This document shows, piece after piece, positions 13,842 through 39,695 of a stretch of 64,000 nucleotides of DNA. The position numbers and the translations under genes were made by a program. The notes under the pieces are model-generated. The model had not been told where the DNA came from, searched no databases, and was given only the letters and a program-made list of their open reading frames with translations. Each line of letters begins with the position of its first letter. The stretch's first letter is position 1. The DNA lies in sequence record OP123707.1. One strand, written 5' to 3'.

Positions 13842-13853
13842 ACCTATATTACT
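13842..13853 (+). promoter_or_regulatory. Putative early (virion RNAP) promoter ACCTATATTACT
   Basis: The motif recurs in intergenic positions at 25553, 30720, 39685, 56007 (and a variant at 20749) and matches the phiKZ early consensus TATATTAC. Confidence 0.75.
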
Positions 13854-20748: not shown

Positions 20749-20760
20749 ATCTATATTATC
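20749..20760 (+). promoter_or_regulatory. Variant early promoter ATCTATATTATC
   Basis: Close variant of the recurring motif, in an AT-rich intergenic region ~50 nt upstream of ATG 20807. Confidence 0.55.
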
Positions 20761-22609: not shown

Positions 22610-22667
22610 AGACACGTGAGGTGGGGTCACACCTACCTCACTTATTTTTGTTATTTAAGGATTTATC

Positions 22668-23187: not shown

Positions 23188-23670
23188 ATGAAAACAAAGT
23201 TAGATTTAGAAAGTGGGACCGCTAAGGGTTACGTCTCCGTAGACTTGGCGTTCCATCAATGTGAACGCATCCGTGATGTGTTGATCGAACAAAACATCAC
23301 TCCCATCGACCAAGGTCATTTTCACTCTACAATAGCGTACGACAGAGAAGTTAATGGCTCGTGTTTAGAAATCGAGATCGACCCTACTAAGATTTATGAA
23401 GGGGAAGTAGTCGCGATTGAACTGTTGGGACCTATCAAAGATGGGAAACAATCCGCACTGGCATTCGTTCTTAAATCCGATCAATTGCGTGAAGAACATT
23501 TCAAATGGATGGCGGTTGGATTCGATCACGGGTGGGATGATTACATCCCCCATATGTCAGTGGCGTATGACATCGATGTTGAAGAAGGGGAACGCATGAA
23601 AGAGATCTTAAAACCTTTCATCGGAGAGACCTTCTATTTTGACAACTTAAGTGCTGAACCTGTTCAGTGA
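23188..23670 (+). CDS. acb1: 2H phosphoesterase, Acb1-like anti-CBASS nuclease
   Basis: Two HxS/T motifs (FHSTIAYDR, DDYIPHMSVAY) in the arrangement of T4 Acb1/gp57B (IHSTICYSR, DDYTPHITLSY). ATG 23188 follows the previous stop. Confidence 0.82.
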   Translation: MKTKLDLESGTAKGYVSVDLAFHQCERIRDVLIEQNITPIDQGHFHSTIAYDREVNGSCLEIEIDPTKIYEGEVVAIELLGPIKDGKQSALAFVLKSDQLREEHFKWMAVGFDHGWDDYIPHMSVAYDIDVEEGERMKEILKPFIGETFYFDNLSAEPVQ

Positions 23671-23723
23671 TTTTGTGCCCTACCTTAACGGGTAGGGTTT
23701 ATTTTTGTTTTAGGATTATAATA

Positions 23724-24371
23724 ATGAGTAGAAAACCAAAGGGCCGTCGTAACGTGCAAGTTGACCTTCGTCGTCGTCAGAGTCAAAAACGTAACCAAAG
23801 AACCATCGCATTGGTCGTGGCTAAAATCAATGACATGTTGTATTTCTCGGGTTCCCACGTTCACAAAATGGATGGGAAACATTGGTTTCCGTCCCTAAAA
23901 CACCTAGCGCGTCACGATGATCGTAAAACCGCCATTAAGGTCGCGATCCAAACGTTGTGTCAAGAAACCGAATGGCAGCTGCTCCACTTTATTGCAGTGG
24001 ACGTTGGTGACAGCGTTGAGTTGTTCTCGTTCACGAACGTTTTGCATAAGGCCACTTACCTCACCGCCCCAGAGAAAGTCATGGAGTTGATCGATGGTAC
24101 GTTGAAAATGACACAAAAGAACATCGATGACGAAGTAGAGGTTGAAGGCACTCAACTGACCAAATACGCGAAGATCACCGGGTTTGCTTATTACTTATTT
24201 AACTCCACCGGGTATGATATAAAGGGATCCGAAGACGACATCGCCGATTCGTTGTTTGAAACAGGAACATTCGATTACCCGTTTGATCCTAACGAATACG
24301 AACGTTTAACCCCTACTGATTTTTCTGAATTCTTCACTCGTCAAGAACAAGCTTGTATTAAACTATCTTAG
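23724..24371 (+). CDS. Hypothetical protein with basic N-terminus
   Basis: ATG 23724 (MSRKPKGRR) after the terminator hairpin CCCTACC/GGTAGGG and an AGGA RBS. Confidence 0.7.
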   Translation: MSRKPKGRRNVQVDLRRRQSQKRNQRTIALVVAKINDMLYFSGSHVHKMDGKHWFPSLKHLARHDDRKTAIKVAIQTLCQETEWQLLHFIAVDVGDSVELFSFTNVLHKATYLTAPEKVMELIDGTLKMTQKNIDDEVEVEGTQLTKYAKITGFAYYLFNSTGYDIKGSEDDIADSLFETGTFDYPFDPNEYERLTPTDFSEFFTRQEQACIKLS

Positions 24372-24381
24372 AGGAACCACT

Positions 24382-25542
24382 ATGTCTAACTACATTCATT
24401 CACTGGCACAAATCATTGCACAACTACCAACAATTACTGAACAAACTCCGGTACTCAACTTCCAACACCAATTTGTTGCGGACCAAGAAGGTTTCTTACC
24501 ACAATGGTCAGACGTAGCACGAATCGACGGGGTTAAACAAGCGGTCGGTGAATTGAACTGGTTATTTTCAGATCGACCTTCTTTAATGGACCTGCATCCT
24601 ACTGGTTGTCATCACCGCGACGGTTTAGCGGTGTACGAAGACTTGAACATCACTAATGAACTAACTGAAGCTGATCGACATAATCGCGTCATGGTGAAAT
24701 TCATCGAAGCGGGATTAGAGATCAAGAGCATAGAAGACGTTCGTCAGGCTTACATCGACAACGGTATGATGGCGAAACATCTAACCTTGGATAAATGCAT
24801 TGAAGAATCGGGCATCGGTTCTACAGAAACCATTCCAGTGGTGGGCGCTGGCGAAACTGGTCAAAACCACGGCATGTTCTTTTCCTCGGTGGCACCCAAC
24901 GGCGTGTTCTTCTTCCAACATCCTAGCATGATGCCAGATGCGGCTCTGACTTTAGAAGAGAACCTAATCCAAGGTCGTCTTGGTTACACACCAAAGCAAA
25001 CCACATTAAGTTTTGTTAAACTCCCAATCCCTTCTGATAAACGTCTCGAGTATTTCTTTAACGAATTCGAGTGCAACGATGAAGTGGCAGTTAATGTAGT
25101 GAAAGCATTAGTGGAGGGTAAATCGTTCGCTGAAACCCCTGGGTTAGACGTGTACATGGATGACGCCATGTTTGAATCATCAGGTTCTAGCGGTGCTATC
25201 AAACACGTACTAAATATCGTTGAGTGCCCGGAGTTCCATTTGCACGCTAAGTTGCATTTATCGAACCTGTTCCCGATTACAGAGTTCAGTTATGAAGTCC
25301 TGCCGTACATCATCTACGCTCGACAAGTTTCGGACTCCCTCAATGCGCTTTACCAATCATTCACGCTGGACGTCAATGCGATCATCTTGGATGAAGAAGA
25401 AGTTGACTTGGTCAATACGGTATTGGACGAGCATCAGTTCAGTGTTCCATCGGCCTCGTTCTCATTACCGGAAGACTTCAGTTTCGGCGATCGTCCTTTA
25501 ACCATGGACGACCTTAACTTAGTGGGTTACCACGGCAACTAA
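24382..25542 (+). CDS. Thymidylate synthase (ThyA)-fold protein lacking catalytic residues
   Basis: Aligns by eye to ThyA end to end: MSNYIHSLAQII, GELNWLFSD, PSMMPDAALTLEENLIQGRLGYTPKQ, LTMDDLNLVGY. PCH is replaced by PKQ and the QRS-x-D, N and H-x-Y motifs are absent. Confidence 0.7.
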   Translation: MSNYIHSLAQIIAQLPTITEQTPVLNFQHQFVADQEGFLPQWSDVARIDGVKQAVGELNWLFSDRPSLMDLHPTGCHHRDGLAVYEDLNITNELTEADRHNRVMVKFIEAGLEIKSIEDVRQAYIDNGMMAKHLTLDKCIEESGIGSTETIPVVGAGETGQNHGMFFSSVAPNGVFFFQHPSMMPDAALTLEENLIQGRLGYTPKQTTLSFVKLPIPSDKRLEYFFNEFECNDEVAVNVVKALVEGKSFAETPGLDVYMDDAMFESSGSSGAIKHVLNIVECPEFHLHAKLHLSNLFPITEFSYEVLPYIIYARQVSDSLNALYQSFTLDVNAIILDEEEVDLVNTVLDEHQFSVPSASFSLPEDFSFGDRPLTMDDLNLVGYHGN

Positions 25543-25552
25543 ATTAATTCAC

Positions 25553-25564
25553 ACCTATATTACT
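25553..25564 (+). promoter_or_regulatory. Putative early promoter ACCTATATTACT
   Basis: Exact copy of the 13842 motif, upstream of the chaperonin gene. Confidence 0.75.
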
Positions 25565-25628
25565 CAGGTGTCAAAGCCTGAGTAATAATTTTTATTACTT
25601 TTATATTAACCTTAATTAAGGAATCAAC

Positions 25629-27188
25629 ATGTACGTTAATTACAAAGAAACCAAAGACCTAAAAAGCACTGTCGTTAATGAAGTATGTGGTGCTGTTGTA
25701 GCGACCATGGGTCCCGACGGTCAAGTGGTGGTTTGTGATAAATCTGGTATTCCTCATCCAACCAAAGATGGGGTGACTGTTGCGAGAGCCATGCGCTTCG
25801 AAGACAAGTCAAAAGATTTGATCGCTACCATGATAGCTGAATGTTGTTTGCGCACTGACCGCATTTGTGGGGATGGTACGACAACCACTGCTTTCTTATT
25901 GAGAGAATTCTATCGTCGTTTCCACACAGACATTAACTTCCGTACTAAGAAGTTGTTGCGTCAATACACGGATGAAGTCATCGAGATACTGGACCAAATG
26001 GCTGTGCACGTTACCATCGACTCAACTCTGTTGCGTGACGTGATGTTAACCACCAGTAACAGTGATGAACGCATCGTGGACAAAGTGCTGGAGATCTATC
26101 GTGAAAACCCACATCTGCCTGAACTTGAACTGGCGGACTCTGGGGATGATGAAGACCACGTTCAATCGAAACAAGGTTGTACTTGGCCGGGTGGTTTCTC
26201 TTCACCAGACATGTCTAACCTAGGCACCGGTACCGTAGAGACGTTCACAGGTCGAGGTGATTACCGTCCGGTGTTGCTGTCGGATAAACTGGCGGGATTA
26301 GAGAGTAAAGATGAAATCAACAAATTCATGGAGCTGACTTCAGAGTTCATCAATGCAGGTGGCACATACTTAATCATTTGTCGTGGTACCGAACCACAAA
26401 CTGAGCAAATCATTAAGTCCATGAATGCTTCCATTGGTCGTGTGGGTTACAAAGTCATTAAGATCAATGCCGCGGGTTCATCTGGTGTGTCGATCATCAA
26501 TGACATCGCTTTGGTGTTAAACACAAAGATGCAGGTAACGTTGTTGGAAAACGAAGCAGTTTACGGACTGGATATCGTACGCCCTTCAATCGCAGTCAGC
26601 ATTTCTCAGTTCCGTGTTGCGGGTTACTTAGCAGAACACCAAGCGGCCCTCGACAAAGCCATCCTAGCGGTGAAGGATGTTATTGGGGAACTTGACGTAG
26701 AGCAACGTAATAGTGCGTTAGGTAAAATCATCAAGTCTCGCCTTCAAATCCTATCGGGTGGTAGCGTTAAGTTGTACGTTGGTGGTGTAACGGAATCTGA
26801 CATCAAAGAACGTCGTGACCGTTATGAAGACGTAGGTCGTGTTTGTAAGTCGGCGTTAACGAATGGCGTGCTGCAAGGTTGTGGTTACACGTTGGCACAA
26901 ATCGCTGCGGTATTAGAAACTAAATATCCAGAGTGTCACGTTGCTTCAACTTATGCGTCGGTATTACGTCAACAGGTCGTTTACTTGATGCAACAAGACT
27001 TCGACAAAATCACCGAGTACACAAACTTAGCGACCGGAGAAACAGGAGCCACTCCGGGTGAGATCAATGTATGGGATGCGGCACTGGCTACTCGCACGGC
27101 ATTAGAAGCGGGGGTATCTATGGCGATCATGCTGGCGGATACTAACTCACTGATTCTGAATTCTCGTTTGAGTGATGTGCGTTTTTAA
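25629..27188 (+). CDS. groEL: Phage chaperonin (GroEL-like)
   Basis: TMGPDG, TKDGVTVA, GDGTTTT, RYED (D398 equivalent), GVLQGCG. No GGM tail and no groES in the window. Confidence 0.93.
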   Translation: MYVNYKETKDLKSTVVNEVCGAVVATMGPDGQVVVCDKSGIPHPTKDGVTVARAMRFEDKSKDLIATMIAECCLRTDRICGDGTTTTAFLLREFYRRFHTDINFRTKKLLRQYTDEVIEILDQMAVHVTIDSTLLRDVMLTTSNSDERIVDKVLEIYRENPHLPELELADSGDDEDHVQSKQGCTWPGGFSSPDMSNLGTGTVETFTGRGDYRPVLLSDKLAGLESKDEINKFMELTSEFINAGGTYLIICRGTEPQTEQIIKSMNASIGRVGYKVIKINAAGSSGVSIINDIALVLNTKMQVTLLENEAVYGLDIVRPSIAVSISQFRVAGYLAEHQAALDKAILAVKDVIGELDVEQRNSALGKIIKSRLQILSGGSVKLYVGGVTESDIKERRDRYEDVGRVCKSALTNGVLQGCGYTLAQIAAVLETKYPECHVASTYASVLRQQVVYLMQQDFDKITEYTNLATGETGATPGEINVWDAALATRTALEAGVSMAIMLADTNSLILNSRLSDVRF

Positions 27189-27263
27189 TCAATAAAGATG
27201 TGGGTTCCTACGGGGACTCACATTTATTGAGGTTTATTTTTTTGTTAAAAGGAGAACAATAAC

Positions 27264-28137: not shown

Positions 28138-28406
28138 TCACCGACTTAGAAGGCAATCCTTCGAACTGGTTGCGTTGGACCATCGGGGTGGTGTTGTTGT
28201 GTCTTGGGATGATCTTCGGTCAATGGTGTATCGTGGTTGGAATTTTGTCTACCTATCTCACCGCGGTCGTTCTGGGGTTCACCACGTCCGGTGAAGAGTA
28301 CGCCTTGGACATCAGTAAAGACACCTTCATCACTTTCAACAATCTAGGCATTTCGATTGCGGTCGGATTATTAATTACTTTCACTTTACACATAGCGGGA
28401 CTCTAA
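28134..28406 (+). CDS. Small membrane protein (~3 TM)
   Basis: ATGA-coupled; three hydrophobic segments; stop overlaps the tdk start (TAATG). Confidence 0.7.
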   Translation: MITDLEGNPSNWLRWTIGVVLLCLGMIFGQWCIVVGILSTYLTAVVLGFTTSGEEYALDISKDTFITFNNLGISIAVGLLITFTLHIAGL

Positions 28407-29002
28407 TGAGCAAGATCTATTTTTACACTAGCGCCATGAACTCAGGCAAGACCACCACAGCCATCCAAACAGCCTTTAATTATAAAGAGCGTGGGATGTA
28501 CCCTTACGTCCTTAAACCGGTCGTGGATACTCGTGACGGCTGTCCTCGTACGCTATCTAGTCGTAGTGGAGCTAAATGGGATAACTGCATTCCTTTCCCG
28601 AAAGAAGGGTTGGGTGAGATGGAGTTGTGGTTACGTAATCCTGAGCAAGCTCCAGACGTCATCATTATCGATGAAGTGCAGTTCATCAGTGTTGAGCAAA
28701 TTGAAGCCCTGAGTTTGATTTGTGAAGAACGCGGTATCCCACTGTTATGTTACGGTCTGCGTAACAACTTCCAGGGTGGGGGTTTCCCAGCGTCTGATTG
28801 GCTATTGCGTCATGCATCGAGCATCAACATCGTGAAAGGGATGTGTTGGTGTGGGAAGAATGCAACCCACAACATGATGGTCATGGATGGGAAAGCGCAC
28901 TACGGTAACCCGGGTGAATCCGCAGTGGTGGTGGGCGGTAATGAAACGTATCATGCGGTGTGTTTAACCCACTTCCGTAGCGGTGAGTTCAAACGTCCTT
29001 AG
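28406..29002 (+). CDS. tdk: Thymidine kinase (TK1/bacterial type)
   Basis: SAMNSGKTT P-loop, IIDEVQF, CYGLRNNFQG, zinc ligands CWCG and YHAVCLTHF. Confidence 0.95.
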   Translation: MSKIYFYTSAMNSGKTTTAIQTAFNYKERGMYPYVLKPVVDTRDGCPRTLSSRSGAKWDNCIPFPKEGLGEMELWLRNPEQAPDVIIIDEVQFISVEQIEALSLICEERGIPLLCYGLRNNFQGGGFPASDWLLRHASSINIVKGMCWCGKNATHNMMVMDGKAHYGNPGESAVVVGGNETYHAVCLTHFRSGEFKRP

Positions 29003-30719: not shown

Positions 30720-30731
30720 ACCTATATTACT
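30720..30731 (+). promoter_or_regulatory. Putative early promoter ACCTATATTACT
   Basis: Exact motif, immediately after the terminator ATAAGGTAGGAGG/CCTCCTACCTTAT (30678-30709). Confidence 0.75.
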
Positions 30732-39684: not shown

Positions 39685-39695
39685 ACCTATATTAC
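39685..39695 (+). promoter_or_regulatory. Putative early promoter ACCTATATTAC
   Basis: Recurring motif heading the 39755-46284 gene array. Confidence 0.72.

Follow-up and report, generated by a model that had tools for sequence, protein, structure and literature searches.

A stretch of 64,000 nucleotides from the genome of Vibrio phage phiKT1028 (record OP123707.1, 238,838 bp; Tidunavirus, Gorgonvirinae), referred to here as the window, carries an open reading frame (ORF) whose product is homologous, though remotely, to thymidylate synthase (ThyA) and has lost the catalytic residues of that enzyme. This protein, which we call dead ThyA, descends, without catalytic capacity, from the long ThyA of about 390 amino acids (aa) that is typical of the nucleus-forming jumbo phages (Chimalliviridae). 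Dead ThyA is the old resident of this genome, and a second, short thyA is the newcomer. A preliminary description of the stretch had proposed a pseudoenzyme kept for a new function, and this core claim is supported by homology and predicted fold, by the loss of the residues throughout 15 family members, by the pattern of selection and by the presence of the second thyA. We consider it likely that dead ThyA has this identity and origin and is a functional, non-catalytic protein. The phage itself has been described as a nucleus-forming vibriophage (PMC10587174). Positions are given in window numbering, which equals the record position minus 62,000, and the gene is located as follows.

24382 to 25542, + strand: coding sequence of the ThyA-derived pseudoenzyme, 386 aa, UVD32150.1, PHROG 26020 (labelled function unknown), identified by homology and fold.

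The reading frame is intact and runs over exactly these positions, as had been described, and its translation is identical to UVD32150.1, which was deposited as 'hypothetical protein', as were all deposited copies of the family. The relationship to ThyA lies beyond the reach of the curated profile and becomes visible only by way of a profile of the long ThyAs. The Pfam ThyA model (PF00303) gives no match to dead ThyA even at E<=10, an NCBIfam scan returned no ThyA model and a 25-residue chance match as its sole result, a PADLOC scan gave nothing useful, and searches of the Protein Data Bank (PDB) with phmmer and hmmsearch had no ThyA among their matches. An integrin I-domain that appeared in the PDB phmmer search (E 0.02) was rejected, as it was gone when the family profile was used and the fold is that of ThyA. 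Searching phage genomes with tblastn recovered 15 full-length relatives, in jumbo phages of Vibrio and Photobacterium and at 31-47% identity, together with weak matches (E 1e-4) to a 396-aa 'thymidylate synthase' of the Serratia phages Yubaba and Sureiya. That of Yubaba is a genuine long ThyA (PF00303, E 2.8e-60), and its direct BLASTP comparison with dead ThyA reaches E 1e-10, pairing ELNW of dead ThyA with EINW and TPKQ with TPCH. Alignment of a profile of eight family members to a profile of five long ThyAs with hhalign scores 98.55%, with E 1.5e-15 over 290 columns, a span that takes in all three of the insertions described below. Long-type ThyAs are found in many nucleus-forming jumbo phages, among them OBP, RAY, N1M2, AH04 and 201phi2-1.

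Structure prediction places dead ThyA within the ThyA alpha/beta fold. A first AlphaFold2 model, built from eight sequences (pLDDT 76.9, with low confidence in the loops of the former active site) and later superseded, was used for a Foldseek search in which the top 50 PDB matches were all ThyA. The model built from 15 family sequences has a pLDDT of 88.5 and a pTM of 0.79, and the strands of the central sheet are confidently modelled. Superposed with VIA-align, it matches ThyA of M. tuberculosis with Z 20.4 and a root-mean-square deviation of 2.9 A over 225 residues, and ThyA of E. coli with Z 19.4 and 3.0 A over 225 of 264 residues, where residues 2-386 of the model are set against 2-255 of the chain. 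Look-alikes from the ESM Atlas were uninformative, the Atlas model having a pLDDT of 0.28 and every TM score falling below 0.32.

The active site can be followed residue by residue. The residue map was made by chaining, by hand, the alignment of Yubaba and E. coli ThyA with the alignments of Yubaba and dead ThyA; these alignments are remote, yet at all key positions the results of two independent aligners coincide with the structural superposition. The features that it defines are listed here in order along the gene.

24550 to 24552, + strand: codon of E57, which corresponds to E. coli E58, lies within ELNW (24550-24561) and is close to invariant among the members.
24631 to 24849, + strand: insertion 1, helical, residues 84-156, common to the long jumbo-phage ThyAs.
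24850 to 24885, + strand: GxxGxxxG loop (G157, G160, G164, F167), common to real ThyA (GDLGPxYG).
24934 to 24972, + strand: insertion 2, residues 185-197, the 13-residue 'phage-type' insertion, directly preceding the ex-catalytic strand and common to the long ThyAs.
24991 to 24999, + strand: P204-K205-Q206, replacing the nucleophile motif P-C146-H147.
25021 to 25233, + strand: insertion 3, helical, approximately residues 214-284, common to the long ThyAs; the least conserved part, with R221 invariant.
25294 to 25296, + strand: codon of E305 at the position of E. coli N177 (pyrimidine specificity), Glu in all 15 members.

The nucleophile C146 of E. coli ThyA corresponds to K205 and H147 to Q206, so that the replacement of PCH by PKQ that had been read from the gene is borne out. 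All four arginines that hold the phosphate of the substrate, deoxyuridine monophosphate (dUMP), are missing: R21 falls on a gap or P16, R126 and R127 on N173 and G174, and R166 on S294. Of the pyrimidine and folate contacts, N177, D169, H207 and Y209 have become E305, F297, I335 and D337, and the folate tryptophans W80 and W83 have become R79 and L82; S167 is N295, and the general base Y94 is H163. A deletion removes some 22 residues, the helix preceding the DPxSRR loop (roughly E. coli 99-125), and the closing C-terminus of about nine residues (PxIKxPVAI) is absent, the chain stopping at a point that corresponds to E. coli residue ~255. What is retained from canonical ThyA amounts to E58, P145, Y181 and the GxxGxxxG loop, and E58, as E57, is the sole mapped substrate-contacting residue to be kept. 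The preliminary description had likewise reported R21, R166, D169, N177, H207 and Y209 to be without counterparts and E58 to be preserved in ELNW, and it was right on each; no shift of the alignment restores the Cys, Arg or Asn. Its picture of a full-length protein collinear with ThyA is correct in substance, apart from the ~22 deleted residues and the missing last ~9, and the phage-type insertion that it placed before the catalytic loop is there, as one of three rather than alone. In Yubaba ThyA the insertions relative to E. coli comprise ~60 aa past residue 84, 13 aa preceding the catalytic Cys and ~50 aa past residue 154.

These losses are a property of the whole family. A hidden Markov model (HMM) search of 1.8 billion representative proteins gave only 12 matches, nine of which are family members and three genuine long ThyAs; with the isolates included, at least 15 distinct members are known, with identity down to 26%. 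None of the 15 has a Cys at the position of C146. The motif at C146-H147 reads PKQ in 12, including all eight isolates, PNQ in two distant members and PNP in one: Asn takes the place of K205 in P0008, P0009 and P0010, and P0010 has Pro in place of Q206 as well. Since three of the 15 members have PNQ or PNP, the Lys is not a conserved new nucleophile, and H163 is not conserved across the family either. Residues that are invariant in all 15 members are N127, T135, C139, G144, G157, G160, G164, F167, F178, P185, P204, R221, L291, E305, P308 and Y312, and E57, W60, H78, D80 and Q206 are among those that are nearly so. The most conserved regions are the surroundings of the former cleft and a family-specific block of insertion 1, NGMMxKHLTLxxC...G, which holds the invariant N127, T135, C139 and G144; insertion 3 and the C-terminal part are the least conserved. 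Length is conserved, and the reading frame is intact in all 15 members, whose chaperonin neighbours have identities down to 41%. Every member is acidic, with a net charge of -23 to -42 and an isoelectric point of 4.5-5.0, compared with net charges of -1 to -19 in eleven real ThyAs, and the phiKT1028 protein ranks ninth in acidity among the 161 ORFs of at least 150 aa. P0008 and P0009 (loci L023 and L030) have an extra acidic tail, rich in Pro and Thr, that ends in ...AEVNQAYEG. The 'hypothetical' family PHROG 26020, found in every Gorgonvirinae isolate examined, thereby gains a fold and an origin, and the phages that carry it include some proposed for aquaculture therapy.

Selection on the gene was estimated by the Nei-Gojobori method from two pairs of phages in which synonymous sites are not fully saturated, although dS is near saturation in one. 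Between Aphrodite1 and USC-1 dead ThyA has dN 0.013 and dS 0.201, giving a dN/dS (omega) of 0.067, and between PDCC-1 and 2 TSL-2019 it has dN 0.062 and dS 1.74, giving an omega of ~0.036. For the same two pairs the neighbouring genes give 0.027 and 0.033 (RNase HI), 0.025 and 0.067 (chaperonin) and 0.039 and 0.046 (thymidine kinase, TK). Dead ThyA is therefore constrained like its functional neighbours, and its omega, far below 1, holds no signal of decay. Over longer distances the protein changes faster: its identity to the pTD1 and Aphrodite1 proteins is 47% and 31%, whereas the chaperonin has 70% and 57%, RNase HI 87% and 77%, and TK 96% and 84%. A low local omega combined with faster long-range divergence is what one expects of a protein that has been freed from catalysis and is yet needed. 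Homology, loss of the catalytic residues and purifying selection together would, as judged from sequence, class dead ThyA as a pseudoenzyme.

The search for a thyA elsewhere in the genome found a second copy with its catalytic motifs present, outside the window and interrupted by an endonuclease gene. It spans 146028-148069 of OP123707.1 (46028-48069 of locus L010) and consists of two ORFs, at record positions 146028-146633 and 147758-148069, that match positions 2-169 and 169-265 of PF00303. A GIY-YIG/NUMOD3/I-TevI-like endonuclease gene (146763-147620) interrupts it between '...STQRS' and 'ADLGLG...'. Rfam detected no group I intron at the interruption at E<=0.01, and the interruption may be a divergent intron or a split of the gene into two polypeptides. 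This short ThyA retains the Arg of the R21 loop, the PC motif, QRS/ADLG...N and HxY, and matches an NCBIfam ThyA equivalog. Each of the eight isolates with the dead copy has it, with 89-90% identity in its first part, and its next relatives, at 54-56%, are from unrelated Vibrio siphophages and Halocynthia phage JM-2012; they are not long ThyAs. Directly upstream of it, some 60 kb from the dead copy, lie genes for dihydrofolate reductase (DHFR, 144666-145193) and an HD phosphohydrolase. A comparison of DHFRs for co-movement with the short thyA gave pairwise identities that are all 30-45%.

HMM scores, common insertions, synteny and a tree together establish that the dead copy is the old one and the short thyA the new one. 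The family HMM scores long ThyAs (P0011, Yubaba, P0012, OBP, P0013) at 43-66 bits and short ThyAs, including that of phiKT1028 itself, at -1 to -3 bits, and the three insertions are common to the long ThyAs only. The synteny involves the following genes of the window.

23188 to 23670, + strand: Acb1-like 2H phosphoesterase, 160 aa (PF23474, anti-CBASS, E 2.1e-13), deposited as 'hypothetical'.
23724 to 24371, + strand: 215-aa upstream gene, PHROG 24995 (labelled function unknown), 10 bp from the start of the pseudoenzyme gene.
25629 to 27188, + strand: GroEL-like phage chaperonin, 519 aa, directly downstream of the pseudoenzyme gene.
28406 to 29002, + strand: thymidine kinase, the downstream anchor of the thyA...chaperonin...TK block.

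The ancestral order of the slot is RNase HI, Acb1-like, ..., thyA, [DHFR], GroEL-like chaperonin, ..., TK. In OBP and Yubaba a long thyA is followed by about six genes, DHFR, ClpP, one gene, the chaperonin (OBP gp246), two small genes and TK. In the window and in most members of the family the order is RNase HI, ..., Acb1-like, the 215-aa gene, dead ThyA, chaperonin, small genes and TK. The window chaperonin is homologous to YUBABA_01110 (519 aa, in the same slot as OBP gp246), with E 2e-52 and 28% identity, and a chaperonin gene lies directly downstream in every member with downstream sequence except L030, where DHFR stands between. Two metagenomic contigs look like successive stages of the change. 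The 169-kb contig L029 encodes a catalytic long ThyA (P0011, matched by PF00303) and DHFR inside the block of RNase HI/Acb1...chaperonin...TK, and in the 18-kb contig L030 the stop of a dead copy (PNQ) overlaps the start of DHFR, with chaperonin and TK beyond. The DHFR of L030 (2048-2785) has 245 aa and a C-terminal extension of ~70 aa.

A maximum-likelihood tree unites the 15 dead copies in a single clade (100/100), whose long stem attaches next to P0011, and groups the short ThyA of phiKT1028 with the ThyAs of the Vibrio siphophages and the Halocynthia phage (100/100). Because the stem is long, the point of attachment is vulnerable to long-branch effects, and the insertions and deletions and the synteny are the stronger evidence of origin. 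What this ancestry offers is a clean and datable phage case in which an essential enzyme of nucleotide metabolism appears to have been displaced by an acquired gene and the original copy retained for another purpose, with living intermediates in a syntenic phage that has the catalytic copy and one in which the dead copy overlaps DHFR.

The fold and the evolutionary route of dead ThyA are clear, while its present role is something we infer. Catalysis would have passed to the acquired short thyA, a displacement by a xenologue, and the old protein would have been kept for an activity other than catalysis, one that either belonged to long ThyA already or arose later. We tentatively favour a probably dimeric binding or scaffold subunit that might hold ThyA-type contacts with DHFR, short ThyA and TK in the cytoplasm, with the conserved, now acidic former cleft and insertion 1 as its possible interaction surface. 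The fixed place of the gene in every member, its setting in a nucleotide-metabolism block and the overlap with the start of DHFR in L030 suggest such a role. The association of ThyA with DHFR also has precedents: the thymidylate synthase and DHFR of T4 belong to a dNTP-synthetase complex, and the two enzymes are fused in protozoa and plants as a bifunctional DHFR-TS. Several points weigh on the other side. The link to DHFR rests on one metagenomic contig, since DHFR is not adjacent in the isolates and the other contigs examined. The conserved cleft residues take part in packing the core as well, which could explain their conservation even if the cleft binds nothing, and fast long-range divergence fits a loosely constrained or co-evolving binder rather than a specific conserved complex. 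A role directed at the host is equally compatible with the locus, as the Acb1-like anti-defence gene is nearby, and the order of events, in which the short thyA was gained before catalysis was lost, is one that we infer. A scaffold role would have as a possible corollary that the insertions of the long ThyAs already held a second function, which alone survived in the dead family. The finding also raises the question of whether, throughout the nucleus-forming phages, the insertions give long ThyAs a further function besides catalysis. Folate binding is unlikely as the retained activity, because the protein no longer has W80, W83, D169 or the C-terminal tail.

Other readings of the altered cleft deserve consideration. 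The four-Arg phosphate pocket might have been rebuilt as a conserved acidic pocket (E57, D80 and E305, with H78 and Q206) that binds a new ligand or a basic peptide, and the protein might then be a ThyA-fold sensor or sponge, or a 'prozyme'-type regulator of phage dTMP synthesis; we hold this to be rather unlikely, but if true, no earlier regulatory or counter-defence module derived from ThyA would be known. The same conserved polar residues of the cleft (E57, H78, D80, Q206, E305) would suit a binder in anti-defence or host takeover, where the acidic, remodelled ThyA fold would act as a decoy, sponge or mimic that sequesters a host factor or small signalling molecule, in the manner of other early accessory proteins of jumbo phages. 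The pronounced acidity (-23 to -42, ninth of 161 ORFs) favours this, as do the position two genes from the Acb1-like anti-CBASS gene within one conserved block and the fast long-range divergence alongside a low local omega. However, anti-defence genes are usually patchy, whereas dead ThyA keeps its place in 15 of 15 members, it has no PADLOC or Pfam match, and the loss of all four phosphate-binding arginines argues against a nucleotide ligand, so we give this reading a small chance. New chemistry in the old cleft, for example with K205 as nucleophile together with E57, E305 and H163, would explain why PKQ is invariant in the eight isolates (and present in 12 of 15 members), why E305 and E57 are invariant or nearly so and why conservation peaks around the cleft. 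It is very unlikely nonetheless: P0008, P0009 and P0010 have Asn instead of K205, P0010 also has Pro instead of Q206, H163 is not conserved, and the phosphate-binding arginines, the folate residues and the closing C-terminus are all absent.

Partners close at hand have also been weighed. ThyA is established to be an obligate dimer, the partner subunit contributing R126' and R127', the interface between the subunits is formed by the central sheet, for which the model here has high confidence, and dead paralogues in trypanosomatids activate their catalytic partners (PMC6221367, PMC3663545), so that dead ThyA could pair with a catalytic ThyA, either as a dominant negative on the host enzyme or as a prozyme-like regulator of the short ThyA. 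With R126 and R127 absent it would only be able to cripple the site of its partner, and blocking host ThyA would bring no evident benefit to a phage with dTMP synthesis of its own. The dominant-negative form in particular is made unlikely by the -1 to -3 bits of the short ThyAs, which mark an extremely remote relationship, and by fast divergence (31-47% identity among phages with similar hosts) although host ThyA is highly conserved; we see only a slim chance for a heterodimer of either kind. A dedicated client, adaptor or co-factor of the GroEL-like chaperonin could be read from the adjacency of the two genes in every locus but L030, which extends even to a member with 26% identity whose chaperonin has 41%. 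However, this adjacency is largely inherited from the ancestral thyA...chaperonin order in a block that is syntenic as a whole, a hairpin and a CTATATTAC promoter-like motif separate the genes, L030 has DHFR between them, and such phage chaperonins occur with catalytic long ThyAs too, all of which leaves the proposal quite improbable. Finally, a decaying remnant without function would account for the loss of all catalytic residues, for long-range evolution faster than that of the neighbouring enzymes and for the absence of a Pfam match. That explanation is hardly credible against a frame intact in 15 members down to 41% chaperonin identity, a conserved length, a confidently predicted compact fold and an omega of 0.036-0.067, which in itself already contradicts decay. 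Among these possibilities we continue to favour, tentatively, the scaffold subunit.

Comparison with known systems defines what is particular to dead ThyA. The long ThyAs (OBP gp234, YUBABA_01030, RAY gp67, 201phi2-1 and P0011) are its best neighbours by profile, structure and tree, with the same fold, the same three insertions and the same slot relative to chaperonin and TK. They pass PF00303 and retain DRTGTG, SRR, PCH, RSxD...N and HxY, whereas dead ThyA is without all of these, has ~22 residues and the C-terminal tail fewer, and is far more acidic. Canonical ThyA, as in E. coli and the short thyA of the phage, shares the core fold (225 of 264 residues superpose), but dead ThyA has three large insertions, no nucleophile and no dUMP or folate contacts, and the similarity between them is undetectable by HMM. 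The dCMP and dUMP hydroxymethylases of the T4 gp42 type belong to the same fold superfamily and have diverged in function. dCMP hydroxymethylase has an Asp at the specificity position, and the acidic E305 at the N177 site is reminiscent of it. The hydroxymethylases nevertheless retain the Cys nucleophile, the phosphate Arg and folate binding, none of which is found in dead ThyA, where E305 is the only fitting feature, and a match to gp42 in BFVD is weak (E 1.6e-3, TM 0.16).

As a kind, dead enzyme homologues that are retained for binding or regulation are already well known. The dUTPase-related proteins and inactive ribonucleotide-reductase R1 homologues of herpesviruses are comparable viral pseudoenzymes, and in trypanosomatids dead enzyme homologues known as 'prozymes' are kept for binding or regulation (PMC6221367, PMC3663545). 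The event is the same, in that an enzyme of nucleotide or polyamine metabolism loses catalysis and is retained by selection, while the enzyme family and the domain of the host differ. Unlike in those cases, positional orthology lies here with the dead copy, and the catalytic copy came in later. In full-text searches that paired thymidylate synthase with the terms Chimalliviridae, pseudoenzyme or jumbo phage, no account of a dead phage ThyA came up, and the literature searched gave no pseudoenzyme derived from ThyA; a dead phage ThyA is mentioned neither in a comparative review of jumbo phages nor in the Chimalliviridae core-genome paper, whose supplementary tables are without thymidylate synthase. 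The family thus appears to be undescribed in the literature.

The surroundings of the gene offer some indication of how it may be transcribed. Three features mark the boundaries of the short operon to which it would belong.

23677 to 23698, + strand: terminator-like hairpin with a U tail (dG -14.6, z -3.6), upstream of the two-gene pair.
25555 to 25563, + strand: CTATATTAC motif, promoter-like, upstream of the chaperonin gene and in the same place in most relatives.
25558 to 25587, + strand: terminator-like 12-bp hairpin with a U tail (dG -17.1, z -6.0), directly past the stop of the pseudoenzyme gene.

The two hairpins bracket the 215-aa gene and dead ThyA, on evidence of consensus level. A strong hairpin past the stop is also present in pTD1, VP4B, L024, L031, L032 and L022, and is weak or absent in Aphroditevirus members and phiKT1019. 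The 215-aa gene lies directly upstream of dead ThyA wherever sequence covers the place (the eight isolates, L023, L024, L030, L031 and L032), and the N-terminus of its product is basic, the first 40 residues having a net charge of +10. Mechanical ORF calling starts this gene at a GTG at 23667, giving 234 aa (ORF 23667-24371); the ATG at 23724, giving 215 aa, is the more plausible start because the hairpin at 23677-23698 falls inside the GTG extension. The Acb1-like gene occupies its place in every relative with coverage there, the metagenomic ones included, and its product also has a weak 2H/2'-5' RNA ligase signal. Elsewhere in the block, intergenic hairpins at 22616-22641, 23677-23698 and ~27195-27230 are followed by a TTATTTTTGT tract and then by AGGA-type ribosome sites, and hairpin and TTATTTTTGT may constitute a terminator-like module that is repeated between the short operons of the block.

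The window contains four copies of (C)TATATTAC, at 13845-13852, 25555-25563, 30723-30730 and 39688-39695, with a variant near 20750; all four are intergenic, on the + strand and upstream of + strand genes, with an approximate extended consensus of CTATATTACTNNAGTGT. The 5' arm of the hairpin past the pseudoenzyme gene is, in phiKT1028, formed by the copy at 25555. TATATTAC is likely a phage promoter element, and with the promoter-like CTATATTAC in front of it the chaperonin probably has its own transcription start. The motif may resemble the early-promoter motif of phiKZ-like phages; a literature search for it returned irrelevant papers only, and a search of sequencing runs found no RNA sequencing run and one wastewater DNA run only. 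If the early-promoter reading is true, the chaperonin would have a promoter of its own and the closest co-expressed neighbour of dead ThyA would be the 215-aa protein.

In phiKT1019 no TK match occurs in the stretch retrieved, and an HNH homing endonuclease gene (L006, 8604-9155) takes the position at which the relatives have TK. The Pfam model Cpn60_TCP1 covers only residues 23-146 of the chaperonin, which is annotated as 'hypothetical protein' in several relatives.

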